In this document: piece after piece, positions 284 to 63,486 of the stretch
Layout: each line of letters begins with the position of its first letter
How positions within the stretch are numbered: the stretch's first letter is position 1
Origin: Paramoeba atlantica
Taxonomy: Eukaryota; Protista; Discosea
Length of the DNA: 64,000 bases
Assembly: GCA_977017575.1 (NCBI GenBank)
Contig: CDRNVI010000019.1
Coordinates: forward strand, 434,001 to 498,000
Direction: 5' to 3'
The notes under the pieces: generated by a model
What the model saw: only the letters and a program-made list of their open reading frames with translations
Database searches by the model: none
Told to the model about the DNA's origin: nothing
Program-made: the position numbers and the translations under genes

Positions 284-3074
284 CATAGTCTAACTAGTAT
301 ACTAGTATATACTAAAACACTAGTATTCGGCTAGTATACTATAGTATATACTATAGTATACTATAGTATATACTATGAGATACCACTTTTTTGTAGACTG
401 GGTATTTACTAATCGTAATCAACGGACGCATGGAAAACCTCAAGCAATTCAACGTTCAAGGCAAAGGAAGCAGGAGAATATGCTGAATGCTTCATTCTCC
501 AACAGTTACTTAACAAATCAACCAATAAACTTCCTTAAAAATCAGGAATTGATTTGGTTTACCACAGCGCAGATGCGCACAGAGAGGTGAAAGGATGCTT
601 ATCCTGAGCGAAAGTTGAGTCGAGTGCGTGAAAAAGTGAGTTGAGGGGTGAAAGGAGTTCAGATCTCGCATTCCGCGCATAAACGCTTCCTCACATATTT
701 TTCATTGGTATATGATGTAAGAAAAGAAACAGATCAAGAGCGTGTAGCACGAATATACGAATAAAATTAATATATTGTAGTGTAATAAAAAATACTAAAC
801 GTGGCTATTTTCATCAATGCATAAATATTTATTTATATGTTATTCTGAATTGATAAAGATACCTGAAGGAATACTTCAAGGACTTACACGACACTGAGTT
901 AAACCACAGAACCCAGTTCCGACGTCAATACATAGTGCATAATAGTACAATAAACCGTTGCTGTGGACGAAACAAGTATTTCGCTTGTTGAACGCTGAGA
1001 AAAAAACCAGAGAAAAATATCTCAGATACGGAGAAGAAATACCACAAAACGGAGCTCTGGACGTACGAATATTATCGCAATATTACCACATATTCTATTT
1101 ACCGCAATTCAATTGATATTTACCGCAATGTATACCCTGTATGCTACGATACTCTATATGTATGATACTCTGTGCGCCATGTAGTTCGATATTATTTTAT
1201 ATGGAGTGTTCCGTGCCAGATCCAGTAGACAATTAGCCATCGCGTGACCCCGCCAAGTTTGGGAGAAGTGACGGCTCGAATTTCATGAGAATGTGCAATG
1301 GATTTCACCACCCTAGCACCTTTCGCAATTAGAATCTCACATTGGTCTTCTATTTCCAGAGTTTGATTCAGTTCGGCAAACACATCGCGTGCCTTTAAAG
1401 ATACTTTCGAGAGAGTTTGCAATGCTTCCTTGAGATGAGCTATGGTGTCCCTGCGACCCTCCTGTCAAGTTTTTCACTGTTCACAGAACGACAAAAAGAT
1501 TTAAAGTACGATTCAGCTTTTTGAGTCTCTTCGTCAAAGGCGCTTAATATATCTTCAAGAGCTTTTCCGAAATACTTCCCCTTCTTTGCCCCCACACGGT
1601 CCCCTGCATAGAAAATCCTGGAGAAGTATGTTCTTACTTTCATAATTTGCAGATTTGCGTAGTGCTGCATTGCATCTTTGGCCATATTATGAAACAAGTG
1701 TCCGAAGCATGGTAATAGCGCGACACGTGGACAGTGCTTCGTCACGCCAATTACAATGTTCTCCCGGTCCGTGCTTCCGATAGAGCTGAGGCGCGAGTAA
1801 AATTCTTCCTCTGCGGAAACAAGAGAGTCACGAATGCCTAACATAGTGGATTCTATTTCCTGCCTAGCCACATTATTTACTGGGGCTCCGTCTGCCATTA
1901 TGAATCGCAACTTTAGGAGTCGGCTCTCGGAGAGGCATGACCGAAGTACTTCTATCAGGGATTGTGCCATCTCGCTACCGTTAAATGATTTGTGTTTAGG
2001 GTGGTAGATAGGTGGGAGAATAAAGTGGCGATCCACAACATACAAAATGGCGATAAGTACATGTTCGCTAAGAACCCTGTCAACTCCACCGTCGATGGCG
2101 AGGACAAAGAATTTAGCTCCATCTATGGTTCGTCGAATGTCTTCCCAGATCATGTCGGCAATTCGACGTTCACTGATATGAAATTCGCGAGGAGAAGGAA
2201 GGATCGATGCAGCTTCTGAAGGATGTATGTCGGGGGGAAATTCTTGAAATAAGTTCTTTACGCACTCGAGGAATCCTTCGGTAGAAAGATTGCTCTGAGC
2301 TGCGAAACATGGGAGAGCTTCGGAGATGTACTCCTCTAGCGACTTGGGATTTGCAACTTCACTGAAGTCTTCCATCCCCTGCTGCGCCTTCGAGCAGCAC
2401 TCTTTCAAATGTTTATAACAAAAATTCTCCCCCTTGCTATGGGTCACCCACCCACACTTTACATCGAACATGCTGTGAGTGGCCCATAGCATCATTCTGG
2501 ATGCCTGAGACGTTTTTCCGAGCCCACTCGAGGCACAATTTTCCAGAGGACTCAACGCCGAGATCGCATCGCTCGTACGTTAATTGCTGCTGTCGACGGA
2601 GGCTTCCACAAGCGAGTGGATCGTTCCCGCAGTTGCTTTTTCTCTTTCTCTGGAGAGCATTCTCCTCTTCAAGCGGAGAGAGGGACGCACTTAACGCTAC
2701 TTGGGAAGGTGTCTCCTCTAACTGTGACGTAATTGCGGCTACTCTCTCGCGATGCTCCCGTGCTGACGGTCGCTTTCTTGTGTTTTCAGGGGTGGGGGTT
2801 GAAGGTGCGCTTTCCGAGTTCTTTGAACGTTGCGTCATTTAAAACAGTGAGTGACAAGGTGATTAAAGGAAGTGATAAGGTGTAAACAAAAAGGCTGAGC
2901 AATACTTGTGTACCAGTCCTAAATGTCGCAATAAAGACAAATCTTTTCATTCATATACAGGGAAAAACTACATTTCTATAGACACTTAATAAGATTATAG
3001 ACACCTTCGAAAAGTAGTATCTCATAGTATACACTGTATACTATAGTATATACTAAAATACTAGTTAGACTATG
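284..3074 (-). mobile_element. Cut-and-paste DNA transposon, hAT-like, about 2.8 kb, 17-bp TIRs, 6-bp TSD
   Basis: Left end CATAGTCTAACTAGTAT (284) and right end ATACTAGTTAGACTATG (ending 3074) are exact reverse complements. ACCCTG flanks both sides (278-283, 3075-3080). An uninterrupted paralogous site is at 18166-18240. Confidence 0.9.
1192..2838 (-). pseudogene. Frameshifted hAT-clan DDE transposase in three frames (2437-2838, 1440-2555, 1192-~1450)
   Basis: Motifs VLAIDGGVD (D1), IMADGAPVN (D2), PCFGHLFHN (CxxH) and GVTRW (hAT TRW motif) in consecutive overlapping frames inside the TIRs. No clear C-terminal E or dimerisation domain. Confidence 0.7.
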
Positions 3075-3387
3075 ACCCTGAGTGCTTCGCATCCACTCCT
3101 CAAAATTTAGGTCATGACTCTTTTTTCAAGTGCGTGAGGGCCGAGGAGTAGGAGACTCGAAAAAAAAGGGTTTCTTCGCGCCTGCTTCGCAGACTTGTCA
3201 TTTGAAATTATGCATCACGAAGTTTAACAAAGTGTGAAGCAACAAACTCCGCCTGGCTTTCGTCGTTCCGTCGCATATTTGGCATTTCTGAGAAATAAAA
3301 AAAATAAAGTTTTATATACATGTATAGTATTTAAAATTTTATAGTACTATAAAAGTACTATAGTTTTTAAAGTTTTAGGGACCCCTG
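3075..3387. mobile_element. Right arm of a hAT-type MITE ending ACCCCTG; host of the 284-3074 insertion
   Basis: 247-283 plus 3081-3387 align with 18166-18434, including terminal TAAAGTTTTAG(G/A)GACCCCTG. No left TIR is seen in the window. Confidence 0.8.
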
Positions 3388-3505
3388 AAATAAATGACAA
3401 AAAATTACGAGTTTTTAAATGTTAGGGTGCATTTTTGACGAAATACTGCCCGAATGTTTTCGTACACCACTCTCGCAACAACTTGCAGATTACAATTCAG
3501 AACGG

Positions 3506-4246
3506 TTAACCGTTTTGCGGGTAGAACCTTACATTCGCAGGGATTGCTTTACTAACATTTGAAAACGAATTCGATGTTAGATCAAGGATTTGCATTCCTC
3601 TAGGAAGTGCCCATAAATCGATTGGGCCGTGCAATGCGTTGTTATTTAAATAAACGTATTGTAGTTCTGATGTGAATGTAGTCGTGTTTACCTGACCGAA
3701 AAATCGGTTGCGGCTTACATTAAGTACACGTAACTTAATAGCCCCTTGTGTGGGCTTAGGAAACGTAATTGGCCCAGAAAACTTATTGTAGCTTATGTCG
3801 CAGTGCAGCAGAGTTGAAGGTAAATCGGCAAGGGGAAAACATCCATGGAATTCGTTGTTTTTCAGATCAAGAAAGCGCAGATCAGCGGGCATTGCACACA
3901 CAGATACTTCACCTTGAAATCTATTTTCGCTAAGATCAAGAAAAAGAAGAGTGTGTGGAAGGAATGACCAACTAAGGTTACCTGTTAGCATTCTTTTTGA
4001 CCAGTTCACATCAGTCACGCGGAACGAAGCGTCACATTGTACGCCTTTCCATGAGCAAGCAGAAATAGCAGAGCTCCAAGTAGAGTTGATCTTATTCAGA
4101 CCCTTAATAAAGCGCTCCAAGTTGTGTTCCGGCGGAAACACGCCGGAATGCACTTTACCCAAACGAAGCCTCGTATTGTGTTCCTGCTGGTCTGATGACG
4201 TCAATCCCAAACAAATGAAGGCTTTAGCCAGCTGTACACACACCAT
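3506..4246 (-). CDS. Leucine-rich repeat protein with plant-like LRR N-cap
   Basis: 246 aa; CSWKGVQC cap followed by repeated LP..L..LDL..N.F.G units. Confidence 0.85.
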   Translation of the reverse strand: MVCVQLAKAFICLGLTSSDQQEHNTRLRLGKVHSGVFPPEHNLERFIKGLNKINSTWSSAISACSWKGVQCDASFRVTDVNWSKRMLTGNLSWSFLPHTLLFLDLSENRFQGEVSVCAMPADLRFLDLKNNEFHGCFPLADLPSTLLHCDISYNKFSGPITFPKPTQGAIKLRVLNVSRNRFFGQVNTTTFTSELQYVYLNNNALHGPIDLWALPRGMQILDLTSNSFSNVSKAIPANVRFYPQNG

Positions 4247-4815
4247 AAATTTATTAACTGGTTAGGAAAAAATTCAATGAATCATAAATAAGGCTTCGAA
4301 AACTGAAGAGACTTTCGTGTTCGTGCATAAAAGTAAACGGCGCGAAAATGTTTTTTTAATCAGCAAAGAAATTTACCGTATATCCCCCCGCCCGCCTAGT
4401 ACTGGAAGCGTGCGATAGTAATCCTGTGTCTGTATAGTCTATAGATACTGTAGGAATCCTTTTCTGGATTTTCCTTTTGCCTTTTTCTTGACCGGGGGAT
4501 ATCGCTTTACAATAAAGTGAAAATATGAATTTTTCGACTTCTCTATGGTGGGCGAAGGAAAATCGAATTTTTGTACACCATTTAAGGTCTCAGAACAAAT
4601 CAAGGCAGCTCGAGTGAAAAGGACAGCGGATTCGGGACGATTGGGTCGAAAAAGGCGGTACGCGAAATTTTCCTAAATCGAACAAAGTATGCCTGCAGAG
4701 GGGTATAAAAAGCTGCCGAGGGGTGTGTACTGTATAATCCTCCCCTTAAAGGGTGACCGTAAATTTCATCTAAAAACTCAAATATGTGTACTAACAAGCC
4801 CGACGAATAATTTCT

Positions 4816-5721
4816 TTATTGCAAGCGGTTCCTCGTTCCTCTTTTATCTTTAGCTTGAAGGTCAGAAGTATTAAATGCAGTTTTGTTTTTTTCGGGGGAT
4901 ACCGAAAAAGGAGCGAATGAACGATGCATTGCTGTGGTAACACGATTCTGTATAGTCTGGCCGCGCTGACTTGAATTCTCAACCGAGGATGCGTCTGGCT
5001 TCGAAAGAATTACGCTATTCCGAGAATTCAAAGTACGTCGTTTGCCCCAAACTATGATGGAAAACCTTTCCGTAATCATTGCATTGTCCATTGGAACGCC
5101 ATGAAGAAACGCGTCGTTCACTTTGCTTGAAAACGCGAAGCAGTCACCATTGCGCTGCGGAAACGAAAATTTCGAATTGGTATCTTCATGGAGAAAACTT
5201 AGCTTTCTAGTTGCGCCTAATGATATGCCTATCGTAAAGTCTTCTTTGACTTCCTTGGTCGCGCTACTGTAAGCATGACTGTCACGATGAAATGTTTTCC
5301 AATGTGTGCCATCCGGGTAATAATTCAATCGCGATGCAAATCCATCTACATCAAAGTATTTCTTCATAATTGCCACAATGCTTTGAAATGTAGGAGAAAA
5401 TGTGGGATCCTCATGCCTCATGTGACGGCTCCAATTAATCATGCCTGTGGACGTCTTTTCGGTATCAAGTGACTGTATTTGACTCGCATGCTCCAATAGC
5501 TCTTCCTTTAATGTACGAAAGATAGTGGTATCCCGTTCTAAGCAAATGAAATCTCGAAGGTAGACGCAGTTTCCCCCAAGCGTGTTAGAGACTGCGTCCT
5601 GTAAATCAGCATGAGCTTGCGAAAATTCGGATTTCTGAAGTTTTGCGATGTATTGTGATGCGAGATTTACCCTTTCTTTATGGAAATCAAAGGAAATAGG
5701 CATGAGGGCATGTACCATCAT
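4816..5721 (-). CDS. AlkB-like 2OG-Fe(II) dioxygenase
   Basis: 301 aa; RLNYY..HRD, ISLGATR.LSF, FLHGVP and ERFSIIVW give the HxD...H...R signature. Confidence 0.8.
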   Translation of the reverse strand: MMVHALMPISFDFHKERVNLASQYIAKLQKSEFSQAHADLQDAVSNTLGGNCVYLRDFICLERDTTIFRTLKEELLEHASQIQSLDTEKTSTGMINWSRHMRHEDPTFSPTFQSIVAIMKKYFDVDGFASRLNYYPDGTHWKTFHRDSHAYSSATKEVKEDFTIGISLGATRKLSFLHEDTNSKFSFPQRNGDCFAFSSKVNDAFLHGVPMDNAMITERFSIIVWGKRRTLNSRNSVILSKPDASSVENSSQRGQTIQNRVTTAMHRSFAPFSVSPEKNKTAFNTSDLQAKDKRGTRNRLQ

Positions 5722-6605
5722 TAATAGAAAATAGGAATGAAAAAGTCAAACTTGCGGTAAAAGCTCTACTATTGTATAGCAATCTTTCTTATACTTATCA
5801 ACATCTGACTACGTCAATAGAGCCCGCCCTGCAAGTGAGCGAACATTCGAGGTGGGAGCCCGCGGCTCGCTACCTACCTCCTGTCGGACCCTTAATGTCC
5901 TCTTTGACGAGGACACAAATCTTGCAGAAAAATGTCGACAAAGTCTATTGCAGACCGGCCTTTGAGGCAGTTTCATTATCTGGCAGAGTCGAGAATCTGC
6001 CGTTTGGACAGAAGCGCGTGCTTAGCGTCTGTGAAAGGCAGACCTGGGGAGCGTCATATGCGCCCCCCAGACTTATCTACATATTCTCTGTCTTTTGAAG
6101 GCATGATAAACTAAAATTCCTCTACAAAGACTAATATGAATAAATAGAGGAAGTTTCCGTCCTCTGTTTCGACATCAGTTCTTTCTGTTTCATCAGATCA
6201 TGGCTGATATGTAAGGATTAAGACTATAGATGCATCATAGCAATTAGTGAGAAGGATGAATTTTAAAAGCGGTAACACTCCAAAACTTCGTAGAGAATAA
6301 TGTCTTTTTTTCACACGGAATGATTGCCGTAGACACCCCAGTATGAGACCTCAAATTACGACAGATTTAGCTCGGGAAGCTGGGTGGCTGGGGAGGCTGA
6401 GGGGGCGCGGTGGCTGGATGCGTGAAGGTGGCTGGGCGGGGGCATGGCTGAGCGCACACAACATTTGGCAAATACCGGTCAGCGCGCTAATACCAAAAGC
6501 AGCAAATAACAGTCAGCGCGCTAAAGCCTATTATGTCATGCAACTCACTTTGGTTTTCTTCTTTTATCAACAAAATTTTATATTCCCCCTAGGACCACCG
6601 GATTC

Positions 6606-6797
6606 CTACCCCCTAACACCACGGCGGTACCAATCTTGTACCGCGGCCTGAATGATCTGGGCATTGCCTTTCTGGATGGCCACCCCTATGGCCATCAACA
6701 GGTGAGAGAGGCACCCGTTTCTGTCAGAAGAGTGGGCCTTCGCCACCTTCCAGGGTCTGGGGGCCCGGAATCCCTTTAGGCATATCCCTTCGGGCAT
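6606..6797 (-). pseudogene. Probable C-terminal fragment of a CRE/SLACS-type (restriction-like endonuclease) non-LTR retrotransposon ORF
   Basis: HLLMAIGVAIQKGNAQII resembles the QRLS.AIQRGNA motif that ends REL-type retroelement ORFs; locally GC-richer. Single short motif only. Confidence 0.45.
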
Positions 6798-6871
6798 ATC
6801 CCTTTAGGCAGGGAAGCGGCGAATGGTGCAGGTATCCTGTTTCAAGAAGTTATGGATGCTTTTGAGACTCA

Positions 6872-7300
6872 TTGGCGCAACACTCTTGGAGTCTCAATCT
6901 GTACGCTTCAGGTGGATTGCGTAATCCGTGCAGTGCGAAGGTAAACTTGTTCTTGACTTTCATCAACACAAAGACATCTCTACAACCAGGCCAGCTATTG
7001 TTACTTTTTGGGGACATCGCCAGTAGTCGTTGTGCTGGTCAAATTGACCGAGGCAGAGGACTACACGACAAAATCGTGTCCAAGTTCATACATGATTAGG
7101 AATAAATTTGGTTTGATGCAGGTTGATGAAATCTTCATCGAGAAAAGGAAATATCACCATGGAAAGCGATAGCGGCATATTGTAGTTCGTCGGCATGACT
7201 GAGATAATCGGACGGGAAATCGGCCGCACCCGTTGGAAGTTGTTTTCCTGCAAAGATCCAGAAACACTTCACGCATTCATCGGTCCACATCTGTATAGTG
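6872..7300 (+). pseudogene. Decayed Merlin (IS1595/ISXO2-like) transposase fragment A
   Basis: 7116-7172 reads MQVDEIFIEKRKYHHGKR*, matching the Merlin VDE...KRKY.RGR motif. Confidence 0.65.
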
Positions 7301-8793
7301 CGCGTTAGACTCATGAAGGGTTGCCAGACGTGTTAGTTTCGGCTTCCGTGTCTTTCTTGTCCGCCTTCTTCTTCAAACGGCCTGCCTTGAGCAACCTCCT
7401 CGACATGAAGAATCCATAAATATCCTCGACGTAAAGAAAATCGGCTTGGGGGTACGTTGGTTGAATTCTCAACGAACGGGATTCCGATTTCTGAAGTCAT
7501 AAGAACTGCGGGGTGCGCTCAGAGAGAACTATGTCTGCCACTTCCGCAGGATTGTGTATTCGTTTTCCTGTACTGCGACACGTAGTTTACGTGGAGGCAA
7601 GGCCCAACTGTGAGCGAAGCCCACTTCTGGAAGCAAAAACCCCCTTTGCGAGCAAGGCCCTACTGTGAGCGTAGCCCTGGGACAGAATTATATTTTTGTG
7701 GCGATCCGCGTGCTCCAGTGTGTGGGTTGCGCACTGAGAACCTGTGTCTGCCACTACCGCCGGATTATATTTTTTGACTATAGAATATCACCACTTTTCC
7801 TTACTATAAAATTACATTTCTTTTTGTATCCCTCTGCTTTTCTTCGTTTACCATGGAACTTCGTCTGCTATGAAAGAAGACTATAATGAACAAGACCGAC
7901 ACTCTCCTGAAATTAATGAGGCCGAGCGACTCATGATGGTGTTCCTTGAGGCGATTGATCGTGTCGTAGAACGTGTTCTACATGAGACAGCATCGCACGA
8001 AAATAATCCAGAACCTCATATTCAACCCGTTCTTCAAAACGGAGTTTGGCGAAATTTGCATGCCAGACGACTTTGCTCGCGGTGTGCCGGATTGTTTGCG
8101 TTCGGGGGTGGCGAATCATTGGCTGTGCTCCGCAAGGGGAGAATGCGGTAACCTGGATGAGATCACATAGCCTGTTTGAAGATGCCGTCTGTTACTTTCA
8201 TGGGGCGGACTATCTCCGATAGTCTCGCGATAAAGCCCGATATGATGGTTTGCGACCACCGTCTTCCGCATGAAAGAAACCTGAGTCGGGCCCGAGTTAG
8301 CAAATTCTCTCCATTCCTCTCCATACGAACATTATTGACACCTTCCATGCTCTTTCTTCTTTGGGCAGACGCCGCGAACCATTTATGTACTCGGCAGATT
8401 TTCCAGAACCGTGGAGTGCAACGAATGGTAGCGCAGAAAATTAGCCCATCGCTTGGCAACTCAGCCTTGCATGAGGAGGAGACTTCGAACTACTAATTTG
8501 CCAGGATGCAGGTTGACAAGACGTTTATTGGGAAACGGAAGTACGATCGTGAGACGCGTCAGCGCGAAACAGGCTACTGGTTCGCAACAGATACTGAGCA
8601 AGAAGGAAGAATGATGGGTCTTACCCACTGTAAATTGGTAAAGACTCGGGATCGTGCGACATTGCAAGCTTGGATTCTGTCTCATTTGGCGAGCGCACGC
8701 ACCGTAGTAGTGAGTGATGCTGGAAGGCTTATACTAACCCCGGTGAATTCTGCCGACTTGGTTCATCATACGCTCATTGGCGCAGAGAGATCC

Positions 8794-9612
8794 CGGTGAA
8801 ACTGAACCAAATTCCGCACTTTTTCTCATTTTTGCAAACTAATTTTTTTTTCCAAAGATCTGTCTTTCTTTGATATTGTTTTCACACAAACATAAACTAT
8901 TGAAGCGAATGTCGTGCGAATTTAGTTATTTCTAAATTACTTATCGCTTATTTTAACAAGATGATGCCCTATTTATTGCCTATTTAATACCGTGCTCTGG
9001 AGATGTGGGTTCTTTTGTGGGTGCACCCTAACGATTACATTAATGTCTTCGTGAAGTGAATCACAGTGCTCAAAGTGGCTTAAAGATCATCACTTAACCC
9101 CTCTAGAGGGGATACATGATCCCTCTAGAGGGGTACAGGGGTGACTCTGGGTGGGCAGTACGTGGTCTGAGATCCTGTGGAACCCGTGGAAAATCGTTCG
9201 GTCGATACTCCCATCCTCAACATCATGGAATTGGAAATCGTACCAAGATGCGGACTAATGGAGCACGGCACAACTTTTCGCCCCAAGGCAAGTACAAGTG
9301 GGAGAGTGTTAGCCACAAACGGCAGTGGTCTACAACTCAAGAAACTCACACCACCACTGGAATCCGCTAATTCCATGGTTAAGCAGAGGTCCAACAGTGA
9401 ACAGAATCCAAATCCTCGCAGAGAAATGAACAGGAATTTTGAATCGAATTTTGAAGAGAATGAGGACAATGTATTGCTCTAATTATTGCTAAATTTGAAG
9501 GAGTAGTGTGCTTGCGTCCATCTAAGCAAGAAAAAGGCTCAGAGTTGATGAAGGATGAAATTTTTCGTGAAAACGTTTTGGAGAAAGTGTGGAATTTGGT
9601 TCAGTTTAACCG
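8794..9612. mobile_element. Non-autonomous TIR element of about 820 bp, no clear TSD
   Basis: CGGTGAAACTGAACCAAATTCCGCACTTT at 8794 matches the reverse complement of 9584-9612 with 2 mismatches in 29 bp. Confidence 0.75.
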
Positions 9613-9794
9613 ATATTCCCCTTAATACAATGGACGGTATCATCGGTACGTGATCCGCCCATAACGGATGTCGCCAAACGAGGTTCGACACGGACTCTGT
9701 CGGTAGAGAGGTCCAGGCAACTCGCCTCTCTTTACGCGGCCGGAGGGGCGCACTTCAACCAACCACTGCCTCGCGATAACGCAAGGCAGTCACG

Positions 9795-10065
9795 CCCAGT
9801 GGTTCTCAAGGGAGGCCACCATGGCGCATAGCTCCCAGGAGAAAAAAACGCGAGAAGGAGAAAGCCAGGGAGGGAAGTAACCTTCCTCGAGGAGTGAGTC
9901 GGGGAGCGGTGAAGAGTTGGAAGTACATCCCCTACTTCCACGACAAGAGGTACAGTCCCTGCTAGCCGTCAGCCGGGCATTTAAAAAGAAAATGTATGCC
10001 CGTTTCCGGGAAAAGAAAGGAAGGGCTAGCAAAATGTACCAACAAGGTACAGAAATTGTATCTTT
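9795..10065 (-). repeat. Dispersed repeat homologous to 59525-59810 (SL-headed family)
   Basis: Shared blocks CTCAAGGGAGGCCACC, GGAGTGAGTCGGGGAG, CGACAAGAGG, GTATGCCCGTT and GTACCAACAAGGTACAGAAA.TGTATCTTT in the same order. Confidence 0.9.
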
Positions 10066-10077
10066 ATCGTTAACGTT
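10036..10077 (-). ncRNA. Spliced-leader exon-like sequence plus GT donor (SL RNA gene or pseudogene head), copy 1
   Basis: Minus strand reads AACGTTAACGATAAAGATACAATTTCTGTACCTTGTTG|GTAC: 38 nt, AAC start, and a core one mismatch from GATACAGTTTCTGTAC of kinetoplastid SL exons. Confidence 0.7.
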
Positions 10078-10509
10078 TATGCTGTGGATCACAGCAAGGA
10101 ATTTGTCACCTATCAAGGGTACCACACCAATCATGCGGAGGGTGTGCACGGTACCTTAAAGGGGTGGGTGAAACGGCAACACTACAACTTCGGTTCGAAA
10201 CCTATGGACTTACAGCGAAATGTCACCCTTCAGTGTGTAAAGTTTGGAAACATACATCACGCTCGTGAACAGGCATGGCACCTCCGCATGCAAAACATTC
10301 TTCTGTGCGTCAAAAAGCCACTACGGTGCATTTAATCGCGATTGGAATGGGGAAGATTTGAGTGAGAGTAGCGGGACCGATTCGGAATGAGAAATTTTTA
10401 ATGGTTTCGGTTTAGTACTCAACGAACTCCCGGATTTTCGTTGAGAACTCAAAGAACGTATCCCCAACCCAAATCGGCTATCAACCTCAACATAAAGAAA
10501 ATCAACATA

Positions 10510-11941
10510 CTGTGCCCCCCCCACTTATAGTGCCGCGGTTTTCGACCAAACGGCACCACAAGTGGGGGGGTAGTATGTTTCAGGTCGAGTATCAAAATTT
10601 TCCCCCTCAAAAAACTTGAATGAGATAAGTACAACCCCCAGGAATCCTGTGGAAGTCACAATTAGTGGGGATTCTATGAACCCGATGGGCTGTGTACTCA
10701 TCCACTACAAGAGCTGTCGCAGGTTGCGAACCTCCAAGTAAGGAAGCTTGATCGTGCATGATCTCTTCAAATACATGACGGTTCATCCAACCAGTCGAAG
10801 TTACGTACACCTTCAAAGCGTTGTCGAGCGTCCGAGCAACATGACGTCGAGCGTCTCGCAGTATGCGGGACTTTTCATCTTCTGCATTGGACTTGAACAG
10901 TACCGTAGGAACAAGAGGAAGAGCTTTTCTGTTGTGAACATCGCAAACACCGGAAAGAAAAACAGTTATACTTTCCTTGTCGTTTGTGGTTACGACTTGC
11001 ACGTTACGAAGCCCTATGGGAGCCAATGTTACTCCCGTATTTTCACCATCAACGGGAAGAGACGTTTCATCCCCAAATATCACATACGCGTAGGAACGGA
11101 CTTGATTTTGTATGTAGAGCTGCCGTGCCCAAGCTCGTATTCGCGAGCCCACGTCGGAAGGACCCACGTAGTGGACACGTCCAAATCTTCGGTTTGTCCA
11201 CCGGAAAAGACGCTTGAAGCGCTTGTATATGCGTTCCTTCGTCTCATGGGCAAAGCCTTGAAGCTGTATTCCGTATGTTTCCATAACGGAAAAGACGAAT
11301 GCCTTCGTTGCAACATGTTTACCATTGACTCCTTGGAGCAATTTAAGGTGCACTTTCCTTAAAATTGCCTTCCGCTCTTTGTTAAGTCTCTCTGGCGCTT
11401 TCTTCACTTGAGACCACGATTAATACGTGATTGATAAAAAGAGGCACCGTTGCTTTTAATACTTCGGACAGTTCTTAAACTGATCCGATACTTTTCGCTC
11501 AGCTTTTTTGTGTCCAATTCGCTCAGACACACATTCAACTTCTCTTGCATAGTCAAACACACTCTAGAGGTCCTAGGTGTGCTCATCGGAAGAGAATCAA
11601 GTGTGTTGGGGGAAAGACGGCTGGCCACCGGGGGACCAATTCTCGGCGCTGGCGGAATCACCGTAAACCAGCGTCCCAAAGGACCTGAAATCGCCGATCC
11701 ACGAGCGTGCGCTTTGTCTAGCGTCTCGTTCTCGTTCGAATCGACAGTCATTGAAAGGATAAAGGGAACTATTAATAAAGTTTCAATGATTTCCATAAAA
11801 GAAAATATTAAAATTTTACGCTACATTTACTCTACCTTTTTGGTAAAAAAAATTGGTCAATTTTTTTCGGACAATTTGTTTTCTTCTAAACGGCACTATA
11901 AGTGGGGGGTACCCCGCGGCACTATAAGTGGGGGGGCACAG
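10510..11941 (-). mobile_element. pogo-like (IS630/Tc1/mariner superfamily) element, TA TSD, internally deleted
   Basis: TA|CTGTGCCCCCCCCACTTATAGTGCCGCGG at the left end and its reverse complement ending GGGCACAG|TA at the right; contains HTH and DDE coding segments. Confidence 0.88.
10607..11796 (-). pseudogene. pogo-type transposase: HTH part (11404-11796) and DDE part (10607-11407), frameshifted and truncated before the third Asp
   Basis: LTMQEKLNVC..LSEKYRIS.RTVRSI (HTH); VIFGDETSL; LVVDEYTAH; IPGGCTYLIQV then stop. Confidence 0.8.
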
Positions 11942-12358
11942 TAAACACAATCAACATGAAGAAAATCAACATAAAGAAAATTTACCGCTTTGGACATGTT
12001 TCGGTTTCCAGACGTTTCTTGTCCTTTTTCCCTTTTTCCTCGCTCTTTTTCTTGTCTTTGATGTCTTGTTAGGGACTTGATAGACTCTGACGGGTTGCCA
12101 GACGTGTATTAGTTGGGTCTACGCTAAACGTCCCTGCATCAAAAGCCCCCCCCCCAGATTTGCGCTGGACAAATTTTGATCTGGAAACTGGAAACAAGTC
12201 CCGTCTACTATAAACCCAAAGGGGGCGGGCATACCTAAAACTTTAATAAAGCAAAATGTAGTTTTTTCGCGAGTTAAAATGACGAGGATTCGCCAGATCA
12301 TGCGAGATCATGTGAGATCTCTCCGGAGCGGATTTGGCTCGCGAGAGTGGTTGGACGC

Positions 12359-12735
12359 GGGGAAAGTCAAGGAATATTGCATAAGTCAAGGAATATTGCA
12401 TAAGCCGTAAATTGCTTATTTTTGTTTCCTCATGCGCGAGCGTCGGGTGAATTGGTTTATTGAAGCTTGTGACGACTTTCATTGCATTGAATATTTCTCT
12501 TTGAACAATTTTGGAGAAATCAGTGCTGTCCTAGGGCTTCCCTGGCTCATCGGCCCGGCCGGCCCCTCGGTGCGTTCGGCCTCAAAACAACTTGTATTCC
12601 CCAAAACAACTACCACCTTCCCCCCTCAACTCCGAGAACTCACCGGGAGCAGGACAGAAGTGCAAGGGCTTTAATTTCATTGGTCCTGACTTATGCAATA
12701 TTCCTTGACTAATGCAATATTACTTTACTTTGGCC
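12359..12735. mobile_element. MITE with GG...CC termini and 9-bp TSD (Merlin- or Mutator-type)
   Basis: GTTGGACGC at 12350-12358 and 12736-12744. Inverted arms are built from tandem AAGGAATATTGCATAAGTC units. Confidence 0.8.
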
Positions 12736-12946
12736 GTTGGACGCTGTCGAAACGAGATCACGTGAGACCACGCGAGATCATATCCGCAGCCCCTCATGTG
12801 TAAACAAGCGAACAAACTTCTGCTAAGCAACATACGGTAACACGAAGAAATATTGTACAAATCTTGTATTAAGTGGGAAACTTAAAGTTCAAGGAGGAAA
12901 TCATTCTAAGAATTTCCGAGAAGAATAGTGAAATTCTTTAAAAGGG

Positions 12947-16289: not shown

Positions 16290-16427
16290 ATACCATATTT
16301 CTTATTTATTTGAAAATAGCTTTTGAATAATGAAAAAGAGTACAAAAAGTGGCAAAATTATCTTTAGTATTCTTCATGGTACAGGTGGAGATGTATTTAC
16401 GGCAGTCTTTATTTACGGATAATATTA

Positions 16428-16673
16428 CTGTACTCCCCCCTACTTATCTGTCACTACTTTTCGCGAAAAGGTGACAGATAACTAGGGGGGTAGGGGTGTG
16501 ACAGATAACTAGGGGGGTAGGGGTGTGACAGATAACTAGGGAGGGGGTCTCTAAAAAAGGCGGTAAATCTCTTCGCTAGGAAGACGAGGTCTCTCCAATG
16601 CTGCAAAGATGAGCAAAAACGGATCAAAAAAATCAAAATTCCGAGGGGGGGGCAAGATCAACTGAAACCACTG
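16428..16673. mobile_element. TA-flanked MITE remnant with mismatched ends and a 27-bp tandem repeat (16471-16545)
   Basis: TA|CTGTACTCCCCCC left end; GTGACAGATAACTAGGGGGGTAGGGGT about 2.7 times; right end CCACTG|TA homologous to the TIR of 17042-18555. Confidence 0.6.
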
Positions 16674-17041
16674 TATAGACGTTTATGGCCCCTGGCATTC
16701 AAGAACAAGTAGCTGCGGCGGCCGCAGAATCGGATACGAACTAAGGTTCCAAAAGAAATTCATTTTCTTCCGAGGAAATGGAAAGTGTTGCAGGCCGCGC
16801 GTAGTTTTCTCCGTCGCAACAACATTGGTGTATTCTCCCGTACAATCCCGAAAATAATATCTTCAAATTTGGGCTTCCTGCAAAACTTAACGAATCAGAT
16901 AAAGCTACATATAACCAAGATGAGAAAAACTTACCTACAAGTGGATTCATGTACGGATAAACTATTTAAGGATAAAATCGCCAATTTCTTATCCTTTATC
17001 CGTAAATAAATATTTCCGTAAATATATCTCGGACGTAAATA

Positions 17042-18555
17042 CAGTCCGCGTCATATTGATCCCCCCCTCAGGAAAGTTTAGTTTTTTTATCCGATTTTGC
17101 TCATCTTTGCAGCATTCGAGAGATCTCGTTCCCGTAGGAAAGTATTTTGCCGTAATAAAACGTAAGGAGGGGGGGCGCCCCCTGGAGAGAATCCCAAACT
17201 TAGGAAACAACAGAAAAAGTTAGGAAAATGACAAAATTGATGTGCGATCGCCGCGTAGCTACAAAGCTTTTTTTCTAGGAATACGCATTTTTCATGTAAC
17301 TAAAGGTATTTTTAAGGGATTCAGACGGGGATACGTGCCGTTTCGGCCTCTTCGGGGTGCTGGAAGAAGAAGTCATGAAAAAATAAGCAATTTTTAATCT
17401 ATTCAAAATTTTAGTAAAAACAACGTGTTTTTACTATGTATGGAAATTATTTTCCATAATTTCGAAGCGTCTGGCTAAAGGGTAAAAACCAGGGGTCCTT
17501 AAAACTTTAGATATATAGTTTATAGTATTTCAAAAAAATTATGGTACTATAAATGGCATTTATAGTACTATAAATACTATAAATACTTTGAAAAACTTTA
17601 TTTCCAAGGGAAGCTCAAGCCAGGGGTCCCTAAAAATTTATAGATATAGTTTATAGTATTTCAAAAAAAATTATAGTACTATAAATGCCATTTATAGCAC
17701 TATAAATACTTTAAAGTGTTTGAGAAACTTTATTTTTAAGGGAGGTTAAAAGGGGTTCAAGAAGCCCAAAATTGTATTGGATGTTGTAAGGGGTGCTCAT
17801 CTCGGGGGCCTGGCGTTCGGCTCGCAGTTCCGGGGTTGAAAACCCTTTTCTGAGATGGCAGTCTCAGGGAGACTCCATGTTGAGGGTGTCAAAAGCTTGA
17901 CGAGAACTAGTTGGTCGGCGTCTGTACCATCAGTGAGATGGCAGTGTCAGGGAAGACCACGAGAAGGTCCCGACCTTGCTCCCCATGTTCAGGGTGTCAA
18001 AAGCTTAGTAAGTTGTGATCGTACTTTCCCCAGGGACAGAGCGCAGTCCCTTCGTAAGAAGCCACTTAAGGTTTGGGTCCTGCAAAGCAGCATTGCTAAC
18101 CCCATGATTGATTTTCCATAGGAGGTGTCGCTCAAATTCCTGTAATTGTGGTTTCACGGTGAAGGCATCCAAAGATCCTCGTTCCACACGTTTTTGACGC
18201 TGAGTGCTTCGCATCCACTCCTCAAAATTTAGGTCATGACTTTTAGTTCAAGTGCGTGAGGACCGAGGAGTAGGAGACTCGAATCCCCTTTTAGCAAAAA
18301 AAGGGTTTCGTCGTTCCGTCGCATATTTGGCATTTCTGAGAAACAAAAAAAATAAAGTTTTATATATAGTATTTAAAAGTTTATAGTACTATAAAAGTAC
18401 TATAATAAAAGTTTTAAAGTTTTAGAGACCCCTGGTAAAAACAGTGGCAAAGTACTTTCCTATGGGAACGAGATCTCTCGAATGCTGCATAGATGAGCAA
18501 AATCGGATAAAAAAACTAAAATTTCCTGAGTGGGGGATCAATATGACGAGGACTG
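17042..18555. mobile_element. Tc1/mariner-type MITE, ~110-bp TIRs, TA TSD, containing a nested hAT MITE
   Basis: TA|CAGTCC...GGACTG|TA; 17042-17150 is the near reverse complement of 18445-18555. Confidence 0.85.
17490..18434. mobile_element. hAT-type non-autonomous element, 8-bp TSD, duplicated left end
   Basis: GTAAAAAC at 17482-17489 and 18435-18442; termini CAGGGGTC...GACCCCTG; second left-end copy at 17621. Confidence 0.9.
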
Positions 18556-18630
18556 TATATCTCGGACGCACACATAACTGTATTGCCAAAGGTTCGAAAA
18601 CATAACTGCCATTTCAAAACAGTACAACTA

Positions 18631-29801: not shown

Positions 29802-29960
29802 TGGAAATTAAAGTTGACAAAACCAATCGAGTGAAATAATCGAGAGAAAAGTGAAGTAAGTTTACATTAAAGACATTTTTAAGGACGTGTAGTAAAAAAT
29901 CCAACTTTTTCACCCAAAAAAATAGATTATTCATGGTCCTTCGGCCATTTTTCTTTTTTA

Positions 29961-30055
29961 GGCTCTTCGTTAAACGCGGCAGTAGTTTTCAACGCGAAGC
30001 GCGCAGCATGAGTGACTTCTAAGTTGAAAACAACCACCGCGTTTAACGAAGAGCC
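29961..30055. repeat. 95-bp hairpin repeat (mini-MITE), copy 1
   Basis: GGCTCTTCGTTAAACGCGG...CCGCGTTTAACGAAGAGCC; the same element occurs inverted at 58824-58918. Confidence 0.85.
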
Positions 30056-30250
30056 TGATATCATAATTAATAAAAGTTGCTCTCCAACAAGCCCAGAGAC
30101 ATGTGAACTCCTATCGCCCACAGACCTTCCTTAAGTGTATTCCAAAAAATTTACTTTCAGCTAGCGATACGAAGAGGGTGGGAAATAGAGTAGATCAAAT
30201 GCATAGTATCTTAGAAAAAAATCGGACTACATTCCATAGAATCACTTTAT

Positions 30251-37560: not shown

Positions 37561-38006
37561 GAAAAGCAGGAGCTCGTGAAACTAAACTAAAATTCGGTTT
37601 GAGTTCAGAAGTTAAATAAAAAATCTCACTATTCAAGAGCACAGATTAAGCTAAAAGAAATCTGCTGCACCTTTTTAAAAGTAATACTGTAAGTTGCATT
37701 AATAATTATAAATTTACACAAATCCTAAATTTATAATTATTAAGGGTTTATAATTCTTTCATAGTGTTTTTATAATTATAAATTGGTTTTAAGCTTTTTG
37801 TTTTACTCGCATGTCCCAGATTCAATGACTCTGGTGCGTACTTCGCGGGGTATTGATTTCATAGGAAACACGAAGTACTAAGGGATAAGTCTAAAATTAA
37901 GTTTTAAGTGAAAGTATATTGTGTTCTCCGTCAAAAATATTTTTTTTCAAAATTGCAAAAAAACTGTTCACATGTTTTTTTTGAGTTGCATACAATCATA
38001 CTTTTA

Positions 38007-38930
38007 AACCCCCCACAGCGAAAAGTCACCCCCCTCTAACTTATCAGCCAAGTGTCCGTTTGAGCTCATTTTTGTTGCATTTTGCTGTTCCCAACACAAA
38101 GACTTTGCGCGTTATGACATGGAACCAAGGCTCTCAAATGCGTGCATCCAATAGATGGATTATCACTTTCTTCATATTTTTCAAGAGACCAATTTCTCAC
38201 ACTTTAACAAAATAAATCTTCTCCTCCCATGAGAAATTCAATTATTTTTGTCCTTTTTTGCTGATTTTTTTTCCGAACGAGAGATCTCGTTCTCCTAGCA
38301 AAGATCTTTGCCGCTATTTTATAATATTGACCCACTTGTGCCCCCTGGCCGCGGAGTGTTTGTTTTCTTAAATTAGTGTGGTATGACGATGCAAAAAAAT
38401 AGAACCTAAAAACAATTTTCTTTTTCAGTTTCTAAGATGATCTAAAAATGGTGGGAACGTGTAGATCTCAGAATTTTGAGCGAGAAAATGATATCTTAAT
38501 CCCCCTAGGCCCCTTCAAGCAAAAAGTAAAGGGGACAGCTTAAAAAAGTTGATTTATCACCGTTTCAAGAAAGAACCAACCAAAGACAAATATTCCACCA
38601 CGTGACAAATTGAATGTTTGTTATCTGTTTTTGATCATTTTTGTTGCAATCGAGAGATCTCGTCCCCCTAGCGAAGATCTGTGGCACCATTTTCATGTTG
38701 ACCCCCTTCTCCCCCCCTGGTCGAGGAACATGAGATTTTTCGGGTAATATTGGCATGACTATGTAAAAACGTCATTAAAAAAATGAGTTTTAATTTGTTA
38801 TCTGTGAAGAGGTCTAAAAACAGCGGGAACGTGCAGATCTCAAAATTTTGAATGAAAAAGTGGTGCCGCAGCCCCCCTAAGCCTCGTTGTACAAAAAAAG
38901 AGGGGGGTGACTTATTCGCTGTGGGGGGTT
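38007..38930. mobile_element. TA-flanked MITE with two internal units related to the 17042 TIR family
   Basis: TA|AACCCCCCACAGCGAA..GTCACCCCCCTC...GAGGGGGGTGACTTATTCGCTGTGGGGGGTT|TA; GAGATCTCG.C.C.TAGC.AAGATC units near 38281 and 38653. Confidence 0.8.
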
Positions 38931-39049
38931 TATTAGAAAGCCTATACAGTCGGAAGCTCTGTGGCAACATATACGTAGTACCCACGCGTACACTACTCTG
39001 ATATACTACTTCAATGCACACGACACCTGGCCACAGGGAAACACCGGCA

Positions 39050-39265
39050 ACAAAAAAGTATCAAACATGTGAACAGTTTTTTTGCATACTGTATATACAC
39101 TTAAGGTTATAAGTACACTTACCGTAAGTACATAACCGTAAGTACACCTACGGTTATATACACTTACACTTATATATACACATAAACACTTATAAATATA
39201 CACATATTTGCTACTTTCGCTTATACACTTACACTTATATATACAGATAATTATGTGTATATATA
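39050..39265. repeat. Low-complexity TACAC(T)TATA-type repeat
   Basis: Repeated TACACTTA, TATACAC and CCGTAAGTAC units. Confidence 0.6.
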
Positions 39266-39459
39266 ACCAGGGGGGGTTAGTACATGTAGTAGTACATGTA
39301 GTATCATTCGTAAAATAGCAAGAGGCCCAGTTGCATAATTATTTATAATTATAATTATAAATACAAAAGTTTTATTTTTTATATTTATAATTATTAATGC
39401 AACTCCCAGTACAGTACTTGCAAAGAATACAGTGCGATCAGGATATTAAACTGCCATCC

Positions 39460-58250: not shown

Positions 58251-58823
58251 CGACCCAAATCATATGACAATGTTTTAGGCACAGTTCGCAAATCCCCTGC
58301 ACTCATAGCTGCAATAATAATTTTTGTAATAATCATTATTAATAATTATTATTATTCAAAAAATCAAATTATTAATATTATTAATAATTCAATATGCATT
58401 TACACGAGGGGCTGCGAGTGACACATGAGGATCCCCTCGCATGTAGACATGTGGTCGGCATTTGCAGCAGTATGATGGCAGCACCAGGGAATACCGCGAG
58501 GAGATCCAGAAAGCTCATTTTCGTTGCGACACATCATACAAAAATACGGAGTTTGACATTTCCCGGCCCTCGATATCAGCACTCCACAAGGAGTTGTTTT
58601 TGGTACAGCACATTTACCTGCGTCAGGCGTAGGCTCCTACTTCCCGCGTAGGTTGAGGTGCACATAATGATGCTCGAAGCATTAGCATCGACTTCATAAG
58701 GAGATCCCTATCAATGCTCCTTTTCGGCATGAAAATATTGTTTGATACAAAATTAAGGGCGAGAAATCTGAGTGTAAAAAGCCCAATAATAATTTATTAA
58801 TAATTTATTAATTTTCTGTTTTA

Positions 58824-58918
58824 GGCTCTTCGTTAAACGGGGTGGTTGTTTTCAACTTAGAAGTCACTCATGCTGCGCACTTCGCGGTGAAAACTACCGC
58901 CGCGTTTAACGAAGAGCC
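58824..58918. repeat. 95-bp hairpin repeat, copy 2 (inverted arms extend to about 58811-58931)
   Basis: Reverse-orientation homologue of 29961-30055; TA on both flanks. Confidence 0.85.
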
Positions 58919-59333
58919 TAAAACAGAAAATTTAGCCTGGAAAACGGAAAGATTATAGCCAAAAATAGCCGAATTTCGGGTAAAAATGGGGTGATTTTCG
59001 CGTATTTTTGCTCTCAGAGCACTAAATCCGACATTTGCGCGTGGGAAATCACTCGTAGGCATGAATGGAAGCCTACCGAACGTATTGGGTAGAGAATGCG
59101 ACTCCAACCATACCATTCTTTCGACACAAAAATGCCCCTTTAGGTCCGAAAAATACTTTTTCTCCTTTTTTAGTCAAAAATGGGTCATATTGAGGGGCGC
59201 ACCACGGTTCGAAGAAGTGATACCTTGCGAGTGTTTTATCATGCACTTATAGTGCAGAGATTTGCTCACCATGTCCTTATCCCGCATACGACGGGTGGAT
59301 CATGTGAGGTTTCGTCCTCGCCGGAGGTGTGCG

Positions 59334-59499
59334 GGTGCGGAGAGCTGGCGTCCCAGGTGCAGAGAGCTCGGTTGTCATGTGCAGGTGCAGAGAGCCGGAT
59401 GCGTAATCCCCATATTACAGTTTCGGGGGCAATCCGGGTGCAGAGAGCTGCGACAGAGCCGAGGTGCGGAGAGCTGGGCGACCGCCAGGTGCAGAGAGC
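59334..59499. repeat. Six GGTGC(A/G)GAGAGC 12-mers with 10-41 bp spacers
   Basis: Copies at 59334, 59356, 59384, 59437, 59463 and 59488. Confidence 0.9.
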
Positions 59500-59780
59500 C
59501 GAGTCTCGTCGGCGGAGGACACGTCTAGTGGTCCTCAAGGGAGGCCACCGTGACGCATGGCCCTCTCGGAGAGGAAAAAGACAAGTCGAAAAAAAGCCGA
59601 GAGGGGGAAGCACACTCACTCCAGGGGAGTGAGTCGGGGAGGGGTGAAGTGGTGAAAGCGCGTCCCCTGCTTCAGCGACAAGAGGGACAGTTCCGACCTT
59701 AGTGCCGGCCGGCAACGGGCATGAAAATACAGTAAGAGTATGCCCGTTGCCGGGGAAAGAAAGGATGAACTAAGGAAAAA

Positions 59781-59810
59781 GTACCAACAAGGTACAGAAA
59801 CTGTATCTTT
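59781..59810 (-). ncRNA. Spliced-leader exon-like sequence (5'-truncated) plus GT donor, copy 2
   Basis: Minus strand AAAGATACAGTTTCTGTACCTTGTTG|GTAC contains the exact 16-mer GATACAGTTTCTGTAC; 14-bp perfect stem at 59709-59722 / 59740-59753. Confidence 0.7.
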
Positions 59811-60299: not shown

Positions 60300-62146
60300 T
60301 TGTCAGTGTCTGTAGGTTCACCTCAGGGAAGAAAGAACCTCACGATGCAGGAGAAGTTGAATGTGTGTCACTCCAGTAATAGTGCACAACAACTTAGTGA
60401 CAAATACGGCATTTCGTCGCGAAGCATCCGATCCATCCGAAAAAATGGTGCCGGATTTTACCAGAAAAAGGTAAATCTAGTAAAATCTAGTAAAAGCTCA
60501 ATGTATTTCCCCCAAAGACATCGATAATCGAATCAAGGAGTGGGCACAAAATTTTTACGTGCAGTACACGGTTCGAAAATATAATTATGTGTTGTTCGGG
60601 GACGAAACTTCGCTCTCTATTGACGGACCAACCACAGGTATGAGCCTTGCTTCCATTGGTGCTCTGAACGTGCGAGTGAAGAGCACCAATGAGAAAGAGA
60701 ATGTAAATGTTTTTCTGGCTGGGATATATGATGTGTCTGCGAAAAAGGCGCTCCCGTTACCTCCAACAGTCATTTTTCAATCTTCGACGAAGGAAGAAAA
60801 TTCCCGCATATTAAAGGACCTCAAGAGCGTTGAAAATAAATTTGGGAAAATTTACTTTCGCGTAACCGAGTCCGGTTGGACGCAAGAGGAAATATATCCA
60901 CCTACATATCGCTCACCGGAGATTCAAAACTTCCATCTGCAATTGTAGTTGATGATTTCACGGCGCATCGCACCAATAAATTGCCCGCGAACTGCGACGC
61001 ACACAGGATTCCTGGTGGATGTACTCCTTTCTTGCAGGTACATGATTTGATTATTATCAATTTATTCAAACGTATCTCTGAAACAGGCCTACGGGAGTGG
61101 AAAGTAAAGTTTCCTACTCAGAAAATAAAGCGAAAAGAAGTTTTGGAGCTAGTCAAAGATGCGCACGAAAAAACATGGTCCGTTCACTTCGAACAAATTA
61201 ACCGTAAATGTCAACGGTACATTTTGGAACCGATGACCAACTGCCCTTGGGAATGGAAGGATCCAGGAAAAAGCTCGACTACAACCAAGCGAGAGTCGAA
61301 AAAAAGAAAAAAAGAGTCTAAGCGGAAAAACTTGCTTGGTACCCCAAATGTGACCACTCCACTTTCTTCCACACCAGTTCTCTCTTTCCCCATCAATGAA
61401 TCTCCTACCCCAGCTCCAGAGCATGATTCTACTTCGACCGCAAGTGATGTAATCCCTGCTGATTCACTTCCTCCTGCATCCACTCCTCACCCTCACAGAC
61501 GCCTCCCAATTAAAATCCCATTGAGCCCCAGTAAAGCGCGTGTAATGATGCAAGCAGCTCTCCCGACACCTTTACCCCTACTTCTTGATGAAGATTCTGA
61601 AGAAGACAGTACACCAGACGATTGGAAGCGCTTTCGCCGTGGTAACGTAATGATTTCTTCTCTCGTTTTGGACACCTTCTGCACAAGGGTTTTGGAATTG
61701 TATTTGTCCGAAACCAAAGAGTCTAACATTGTCTACTGGAACATCTGGGTGACACAGAATATGTTAGCTAGAGGGATACTTCCGAAAAATGTAAATCATG
61801 CTACTCGCATTTATGCTTTCTCCACTATGAGTATCACTATGTACTCATAGAAGTCCGGGGCCACATTATCGCCGTACATGGCAGTCAGCGCTTACACTTC
61901 TACAAAGGCGAATCTAGATCGTTTCAAAAACTGTCTCATGAAGGTTCTGCTGGTAGATCGTCCCAATACGTACTCACTAGTATACACTAGTATGTTGATT
62001 GTCTACAACAGGAACCCGGCAACAAAGATTGTGCCCTGCATGTCATCAACAATCTAAATAATGCGTTGCGTGAGACGAAAAGCATTGTGATCACTCGCAA
62101 GCAAATTTCTAAAGAATGGTTTCCTCGAAAACAATACTTTTGTTAA
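60300..62146 (+). pseudogene. pogo-type DD30D transposase fused to a Ulp1-like (C48) protease domain, multiply frameshifted
   Basis: HTH (LTMQEKLNVC), VLFGDETSL, VVDDFTAH and QVHD; P/S-rich linker; then LHYEYHYVLIEV (from 61823) and VDCLQQEPGNKDCALHV (from 61994). Confidence 0.7.
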
Positions 62147-62712: not shown

Positions 62713-62921
62713 AGAGCAATAACAATTATTACTACCGAACTGAATTATTAATAATCCTGCAGCTACCGTCACCCCCCCCTCACTTGTCCGGGCGAAAAGG
62801 CCAAAAAAGCGGAAAAGGCGGATAATTCGCGTGGTAGGACAAGTCACGTAGCATCAAGAGGAACTGTATGACACATTTTTGTATACATCCGTATACATGA
62901 AAAAAATCTTTTTCGAACTTA

Positions 62922-63370
62922 AAGGGGGGGATCGTTTATTGTTAACATTCGACTATTTTTAACAATGAATTAATTTCGGTTTTTTCGTGTGACTTTTGAT
63001 TTTTTTTGTTACCTATGGTCATGTTGTATAGCGTCCATGATAAGGAAAATGGTGCGCTTAACGATATGCGAAACAATGTTATTGAAACAACCTCCAGAGA
63101 CACAGTTTTGGGTGAAACTGGATGGCAATTGAAAACTACATAGTTCCCTAAAGAGGTGTCATTGGAGAGTCGTTAGTAGCTCCGGCGATTGCAGTGATCT
63201 TCAGTGACCTCCAGAGAGTGCCCAAATACCCCCCATTGTTAACAATATTCGAACTTTCATTGCAACTCGTATAATGTTAACATTGGGGGGTAAATGTTCG
63301 ATTATTGTTAATATTCGATTTTTTTTGGCAAAAAATGCTCGAAATGTTAACAATAAACGAGCTCCCCCTT
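62922..63370. mobile_element. TA-flanked MITE
   Basis: TA|AAGGGGGGGATCGTTTATTGTTAACATT...AATGTTAACAATAAACGAGCTCCCCCTT|TA. Confidence 0.78.
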
Positions 63371-63486
63371 TATTAGGTCGGCGTCAGCACCATCATCGAG
63401 TTCAGCTGGTTTAGCGAGTTCAGCGAGAGCAGCTGGTTCATAAAAGTGTTCATTGAACCATAGAACCACTGAACACACACAAGTGT

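Follow-up and report, generated by a model that had tools for sequence, protein, structure and literature searches.

A spliced-leader-headed, SINE-like retroposon family and its probable R2-like LINE partner, seen from a copy nested in a decayed Merlin transposon

Introduction

How does a spliced-leader (SL) exon come to head a sequence that interrupts a transposase gene? The question is posed by a 64,000-nucleotide stretch of DNA, analysed here at its full length and called the window, in which the minus strand at 10077-10040 reads as a 38-nt SL-like exon followed by GTAC. An earlier reading of the letters alone (the original prediction) had recognised both the exon and the GTAC, and had seen no SL promoter upstream of them; the adjoining DNA is indeed Merlin coding sequence. 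The insert was explained as an RNA-mediated copy of an SL read-through transcript, either a member of a SINE-like family or the 5′ terminus of a CRE element that targets the SL.

The retroelements so far described from trypanosomatids fall into only four clades, whose short partners rely on the Pr77 promoter/ribozyme. If true, an SL-derived 5′ end on a LINE/SINE-like pair would be another answer to the 5′-end problem in polycistronic genomes, and an SL-headed family would form a natural DNA record of trans-splicing. What the window copy adds is an older subfamily whose leader is complete, together with a datable three-layer nest of Merlin, retroposon and MITE; apart from this, the locus is an inactive insertion in an equally inactive transposon.

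Results

The whole insertion spans 8760-10077 on the minus strand and combines an SL-headed, non-autonomous retroposon with a nested TIR element that occupies 825 bp including its TSD; without the nested element, the retroposon measures ~493 bp. From its 5′ end, it comprises a full 38-nt copy of the SL exon (10040-10077), a short piece made of GTAC, pyrimidines and TAG (10026-10039), a 5′ body common to the subfamilies (9791-10025), a subfamily-specific middle part (9612-9790) that is shared with the sister copy L008:10745-10165, and an intact 3′ end (8760-8787), all on the minus strand. The 3′ end consists of TCTC, a hairpin of five pairs (TGCGC/GCGTA), TGA and a short A/C tail, an architecture also found in sister copies and at the 3′ ends of R2-like LINEs. 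The poly(A) tail was originally reported missing, which holds for a long poly(A) and overlooks the short A/C tail.

The original prediction let the insert start at 8779. The 19 bases before this point belong to the element and not to Merlin, as shown by three observations: the sister copy shares its terminal sequence with 8760-8778, contigs of the family keep aligning as far as 8761, and a cut at 8759/10078 leaves 18 residues between the WxxY and VxH motifs of the transposase, as in 11 of 12 Merlin homologues, where the earlier cut leaves 24. (The two Merlin pieces were searched separately, and were joined only for this residue count.) The bases 8760-8778 had been taken for Merlin because the stretch happens to be open. 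With its terminal hairpin and tail intact, the copy is not 3′-truncated, as had been supposed, and insertion during repair is not supported either. The junctions with Merlin are blunt or overlap by 0-2 bp; no TSD is present beyond this, as originally stated.

The same insertion is found in an independent assembly (L002), with one indel in 1.3 kb, and single-copy-depth contigs from run X1 cross both of its junctions. The insertion is therefore real and not an assembly artefact. Over window positions 7500-10500, L002 departs from the window once within the 1.3-kb insert and 10 times between 7790 and 8747, in the left part of Merlin, which may reflect a haplotype or polishing effect.

A separate element within the insert had been missed. 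This nested, non-coding, MITE-like element of 817 bp lies at 8795-9611 (strand unassigned), has 31-bp TIRs starting with GG, and is flanked by a degenerate 8-bp TSD (8787-8794 and 9612-9619, 6/8 matching). Contigs of the family skip 8787-9611 in all four runs, which is 825 bp, the element plus its 8-bp TSD; this joint between 8786 and 9612 shows that the MITE is a secondary insertion into the retroposon. It gave no protein match. Judged by its ends, to which we applied the Merlin rules of GG-starting TIRs and an 8-bp TSD (PMC8101967), it appears to be a low-copy Merlin-type MITE; a CGG start with a 6-bp TSD is just conceivable.

The host Merlin (7443-10470) is decayed; its identity to the intact transposase with an IS1595 domain that L009 encodes is 40-62%. 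Its left part, of the IS1595 family, occupies 7443-8759 (+) and begins with a degenerate TIR (7443-7486), which a direct repeat, AAATCGGCT, overlaps at 7438-7446, such that the TSD is 5 or 9 bp long depending on where the TIR starts. The right part (10078-10470, +) holds the transposase C-terminus, 62% identical to the intact Merlin in L009, and a TIR at 10423-10470, followed by the direct repeat at 10471-10479. The IS1595-type DDE transposase was recognised through L009 and P0015/P0022; the TIRs of the element are degenerate. The spacing in the homologues gives an in-frame empty site for the window copy, and no such joint is among those listed for the four runs, whose contigs show presence only. 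In the order of events that we propose, Merlin would have inserted first, the retroposon would then have landed antisense in the DDE domain, and the MITE would have followed, 26 bp from the retroposon 3′ end. Several Merlin copies have in common a short repeated motif 5′ of the transposase (window 7600-7750; L005:2612-3031; L009:5660-5763). The L009 contig repeats a 6.7-kb unit that includes the intact Merlin transposase.

The window head matches 36 of the 38 nucleotides of the SL gene exon of a related organism, and differs from it by T4G and G22A; its first two A's could be target-derived. The reference gene lies on a JGI contig (L003), the single match of an SL pattern scan, which is a 1785-bp circular unit representing a tandem SL RNA gene unit. 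It has the exon, an intron starting with GTATGAGAAGCT, a stem II, a Sm-like AUUGG and a strong stem III (z −6.9). Upstream of this gene (L003:100-320) are tRNA-like segments that received no ARAGORN call. In the second assembly of the window's organism (ENA ERZ24900291, 99.2-99.5% identical), an unrelated element in L009 opens with the L003 exon unchanged, and the L003 SL is thus very likely that of the host too. That the host is of kinetoplastid type is suggested by the SL sequence and by co-oriented, uninterrupted ORFs.

The window holds exactly two occurrences of the SL core, one in the element head and one at 59792-59807, and the SL pattern was absent from the viral contigs and GTDB genomes searched. 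In run X1, the summed contig depth of the SL bin, which is not a copy number, was 83,000, compared to ~75 for unique DNA and 1,000-7,000 for the element body. This excess over the body shows that SL heads are far commoner than this retroposon family. At window position 10076, a contig in all four runs leaves the SL at nt 2 and enters one fixed upstream sequence, which could belong to an SL gene or to a further element.

The G at SL nt 4 might be thought a modified cap-4 uridine that was misread. There is one case only, two other long heads have T4, and the ~10% divergence of the window copy from its sister copy also counts against the idea, which we rejected. G22A occurs across subfamilies in three of the most diverged, older copies (window 10056; L007:3186; L013:10549), and abolishes the AG inside the SL head. 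CWG hypermutability as its cause was rejected (2/80, both being G22 itself). The loss of the SL-internal AG is only a lead, because so few copies are concerned.

The original prediction had also noticed that the next ~270 bp of the insert recur at a second site, and alignment of 9791-10065 with 59520-59810 bears this out (75% identity over 292 columns, E 1e-43). This second copy (59231-59810, minus strand, 580 bp) belongs to a young subfamily and has SL nt 13-38, the GTAC piece, the shared body, CTCTCTGCAC-type internal repeats, the terminal hairpin and a short tail. It is a blunt insertion into a host repeat, and the empty form of that site is present in L008.

Overall, we found 15 copies of the family in the window and nine loci (L005-L010, L012 and L013, plus L011), sampled through one ORF that overlaps the second copy (eleven other products) and so biased to the young subfamily. 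Their flanks, made up of Merlin, LRR, LINE or repeat DNA, are all different, tandem or allelic duplicates aside. There are at least three subfamilies, 62-90% alike. The elements are 493-580 bp long and have no Pfam ORF; complete copies all end at the same hairpin, and several copies are 5′-truncated. None of the 15 lies in an SL array or keeps SL promoter DNA. An ORF search for more copies of the window copy's subfamily found none, and an LRR homologue search for more loci returned the self match only. A dispersed, SINE-like family free of promoter DNA, as originally proposed, is thus what the sampled copies form; its derivation from SL read-through is not supported, the body being unlike the intron of the relative's SL gene.

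Two trains of two to three copies of different subfamilies, arranged head to tail, were seen at L012:11273-9897 (−) and L008:10745-9677 (−); L012 also has a head of the window-copy type joined to another middle part, with AGCATGA-type repeats. Another element, ~1 kb long and distinct from the family, lies at L009:4277-3300 (−) and 11005-10026 (−); its SL is complete and has no GT after it, and a 5′-truncated copy of the family follows directly.

Short, non-coding and multi-copy, with a fixed 3′ end and variable 5′ truncation, the family fits a non-autonomous non-LTR retroposon. It is SINE-like rather than a SINE in the strict sense, as its head is an SL exon and not a tRNA, 7SL or 5S head carrying an internal Pol III promoter; no tRNA was found in L001 or L002. 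Complete elements have a short A/C tail, no real TSD and no ORF. We hold with considerable confidence that the window copy is a full-length, older-subfamily, non-autonomous SINE-like retroposon of a kinetoplastid-type protist, with a 3′ hairpin through which a LINE protein would copy it.

What moves the family? A search for the terminal-hairpin pattern gave matches only at element ends, including that of an R2-like LINE (shuffle mean 0.11). This LINE (L011:6896-11750, 4.9 kb) ends in the pattern, and opens with SL nt 11-38 followed by AATT, with no GT. The best PDB matches of the RT encoded by the LINEs in L008 and L011 are R2 proteins, and in the L011 and L013-type LINEs a CCHC knuckle and a PD-(D/E)XK restriction-like endonuclease (RLE) motif lie C-terminal to the RT. 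The FADD-type motif of this RT differs from the YLDD of the CRE-like fragments. The L013 LINE has 69-75% protein identity to the L008/L011 LINE, and 26 of the 28 bases of its tail (L013:2880-2907) are identical to the 3′ end of the young SINE-like subfamily.

L013 also holds a chimera (1138-2930, +), in which a re-spliced head of the family (SL nt 11-38 plus ~90 nt) continues into the last 1.6 kb of an R2-like LINE, and which ends in a SINE-type hairpin and an AAAT-repeat tail. It looks like the product of an RT template switch. Together, chimera and shared tail read as the standard signature of a LINE with a non-autonomous passenger. LINE-driven retroposition of the family is very probable, and is well supported because the 3′ hairpin is shared, one LINE is SL-headed, and the chimera joins a SINE-like head to a LINE tail. 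The hairpin of the window subfamily has the shape of the LINE hairpins seen and another stem sequence, so we infer, rather than read, its exact LINE partner. Insertion without a TSD, or with a deletion, is usual for elements of the R2/NeSL type (PMC3636483), and the missing TSDs therefore fit this group.

The 5′ body (9791-10025) folds into a long hairpin, a segment complementary to SL nt ~19-26, and further hairpins with some compensatory changes. Its folding is better than that of shuffled sequences (z −2.5 and −6.1), and the SL-complementary segment is conserved. The covariation is suggestive only, because the sample is small and its members are related. An Rfam search of the element, at gathering and E-value level, returned nothing meaningful, and descriptors of the HDV core and the hammerhead had no conserved match in the body. 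The GTAC after the SL is present in all nine SL-headed copies that are not re-spliced; it pairs with the SL's own GTAC, which restores the top of SL stem-loop I. The AG that closes this piece is the SL joining point in two sister copies.

Discussion

In the model that we favour, the element would be transcribed as part of a host read-through, and its RNA would carry a full SL at its 5′ end. The LINE protein would bind the 3′ hairpin and copy the RNA by target-primed reverse transcription, and integration would usually drop SL nt 1-9 to 1-13. The window copy would have kept all or nearly all of the leader.

The distribution of head starts bears on this. Among the 11 SL heads, the first base is SL nt 1 in one (the window copy, in which two A's may be target), nt 3 in another, nt ~6 in a third and nt 10-14 in the other eight; clustering at SL +1, which had been put forward as a test, fails for the family, with one head in 11. 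In two copies on different backgrounds (L005 and L013), the SL is attached precisely behind the final AG of the GTAC-pyrimidine piece, 15 nt downstream. These joints are best read as trans-splicing of the element RNA followed by reverse transcription, and cis-removal of 15 nt is formally possible. The re-spliced copies start at SL nt 11 and 14. Since templates of these copies and of the LINE would be expected to carry the whole SL, a start at nt 11-14 is probably the usual integration cut point in a full leader. In L005 (10771-10785, −), the re-spliced copy comes immediately after 11 nt that match the SL core and belong to a CRE-like ORF; the match may be chance, an SL mimic or a relic.

Where, then, does the leader come from? 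On balance we lean towards ordinary trans-splicing, which seems likelier than a one-time capture. Plain trans-splicing does not predict that GTAC should be kept in the nine heads that are not re-spliced, or that it should restore the top of stem-loop I. The alternative, which we consider possible and rather unlikely, is that an RT template switch captured the head once from SL RNA, taking the exon together with 3-4 bases from the start of the intron, and that the head was inherited as DNA thereafter. In its favour, subfamilies with 70-75% identity to one another have kept GTAC, which pairs with the SL; the SL-complementary segment of the body is likewise conserved, and G22A is common to three older copies. 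The SINE/LINE chimera demonstrates that template switching occurs. GTA is also the start of the canonical intron, a match expected at ~1.7% by composition and judged post hoc as one event, but nothing beyond GTA matches the intron. Inheritance with erosion fits poorly with heads that reach nt 1, 3 and ~6 beside a majority at nt 10-14, and LINEs and other elements have SL heads without GT.

A more speculative reading, and a doubtful one, would make the SL-GTAC-pyrimidine-AG head a working module, in which the DNA-encoded SL lets the element RNA swap in a fresh, capped SL at the old junction. The swap might use an acceptor other than AG or be driven by homology, such that a promoterless element would parasitise trans-splicing to renew its 5′ end in each round. 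As its signatures one would count the conserved pairing of body and SL and, in the three older copies, the G22A change that repeatedly removed the AG inside the SL.

The remaining explanations fare far worse than trans-splicing of the element RNA. If the insert were a retrocopy of a transcript that ran from the SL exon through the intron into the spacer, or else an SL RNA gene (or pseudogene) that had become dispersed, this would account for the SL +1 start of the window copy, its GT donor in place and the ATTTTG soon after. This Sm-like ATTTTG, however, is not conserved in other subfamilies, and the body aligns with the L003 intron (a relative's gene, not the host's own) with scores of 20 and 16 against a shuffle mean of 19-20. 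The element resembles neither the intron nor the stem II, Sm-like site and stem III of the relative, has no Rfam match, and ends in a LINE-type 3′ end, which makes such an origin very improbable.

We give just as little weight to the second of the original suggestions, in which the insert would be the 5′ part of a CRE/SLACS/CZAR element that targets the SL and takes its target sequence along. CZAR and SLACS insert at SL nt 11/12, near most of the head starts (PMC5814959), and CRE-like RT fragments exist in the genome. But heads that start at nt 1 and 3 extend across the CRE site, no sampled copy is located in an SL array or has a TSD, and the element, which lacks an ORF, forms a complete unit with a 3′ terminus of its own. 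Its 3′ hairpin is found on R2-like LINEs, and the CRE-like ORFs in L005 and L007 are mere insertion targets. Finally, DNA-level duplication or a repair patch of an SL-containing fragment would agree with the lack of TSD and long poly(A), but TSD-less insertion is usual for R2/NeSL-type elements (PMC3636483), and the discrete common 3′ end, the 5′-truncated and re-spliced copies and the unrelated flanks leave it scarcely credible.

In being short, non-coding, dispersed and LINE-moved, with a structured 5′ part, the family resembles NARTc, RIME and SIDER of trypanosomatids (PMC5814959, PMC12278014). These are derivatives of ingi/L1Tc with a Pr77 promoter/HDV-like ribozyme, and their RNA is unspliced and lacks the SL (PMC5814959, PMC12278014). 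In contrast, the window family is SL-headed and has only the 3′ hairpin in common with its R2-like RLE LINE; a search for an HDV-like ribozyme of the Pr77 kind gave no Rfam match and no conserved HDV core by descriptor. This LINE type is not among the four retroelement clades listed for trypanosomatids (PMC5814959, PMC12278014).

SINEU of crocodilians (Kojima 2015, PMC4494074) is likewise a short, LINE-mobilised retroposon that has the head of a Pol II small nuclear RNA and no known internal Pol III promoter, and lies inside DNA transposons. Its U1/U2 heads are proposed to have arisen by reverse-transcriptase template switching (PMC4494074), whereas the window element is headed by the SL exon with no more than 3-4 bases of intron, a head that trans-splicing could add, and its probable partner is an RLE LINE and not Tx1. 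The CRE clade (CRE1, CRE2, SLACS, CZAR) and nematode NeSL are SL-associated non-LTR elements of the RLE type, and most window-family heads begin near SL nt 11/12. Unlike these autonomous elements, which insert into SL genes, the window family is dispersed and non-coding, and has the SL as its own head. In dinoflagellates, SL relicts on retrogenes (PMC5585692) are similar in that genomic SL copies mark reverse-transcribed, trans-spliced RNA, with re-splicing at AGs. Those relicts sit on host retrogenes, whereas the window element belongs to an amplifying mobile family with a dedicated, predicted 3′ recognition hairpin and an SL-pairing body. Our search found no published description of an SL-headed SINE-like family; it covered few subscription journals.

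The host element and the nested MITE resemble the Merlin/IS1595 elements of kinetoplastids (PMC8101967) in their DDE_Tnp_IS1595 relatives, GG-starting TIRs and, for the MITE, an 8-bp TSD. The published kinetoplastid Merlins (Perkinsela, Bodo) have no recognisable TIRs or TSDs (PMC8101967), whereas both are visible in the window, with degenerate TIRs and a TSD of 5 or 9 bp in the host element. Further TIR elements, MITEs and palindromic repeats lie at 284-3074, 12358-12736, 16388-17030, 17039-18558, 37685-39411, 62920-63372, 29894-30074 and 58804-58932, and two transposase-like remnants, at 10607-11419 and 60484-61850, are alike at the DNA level.
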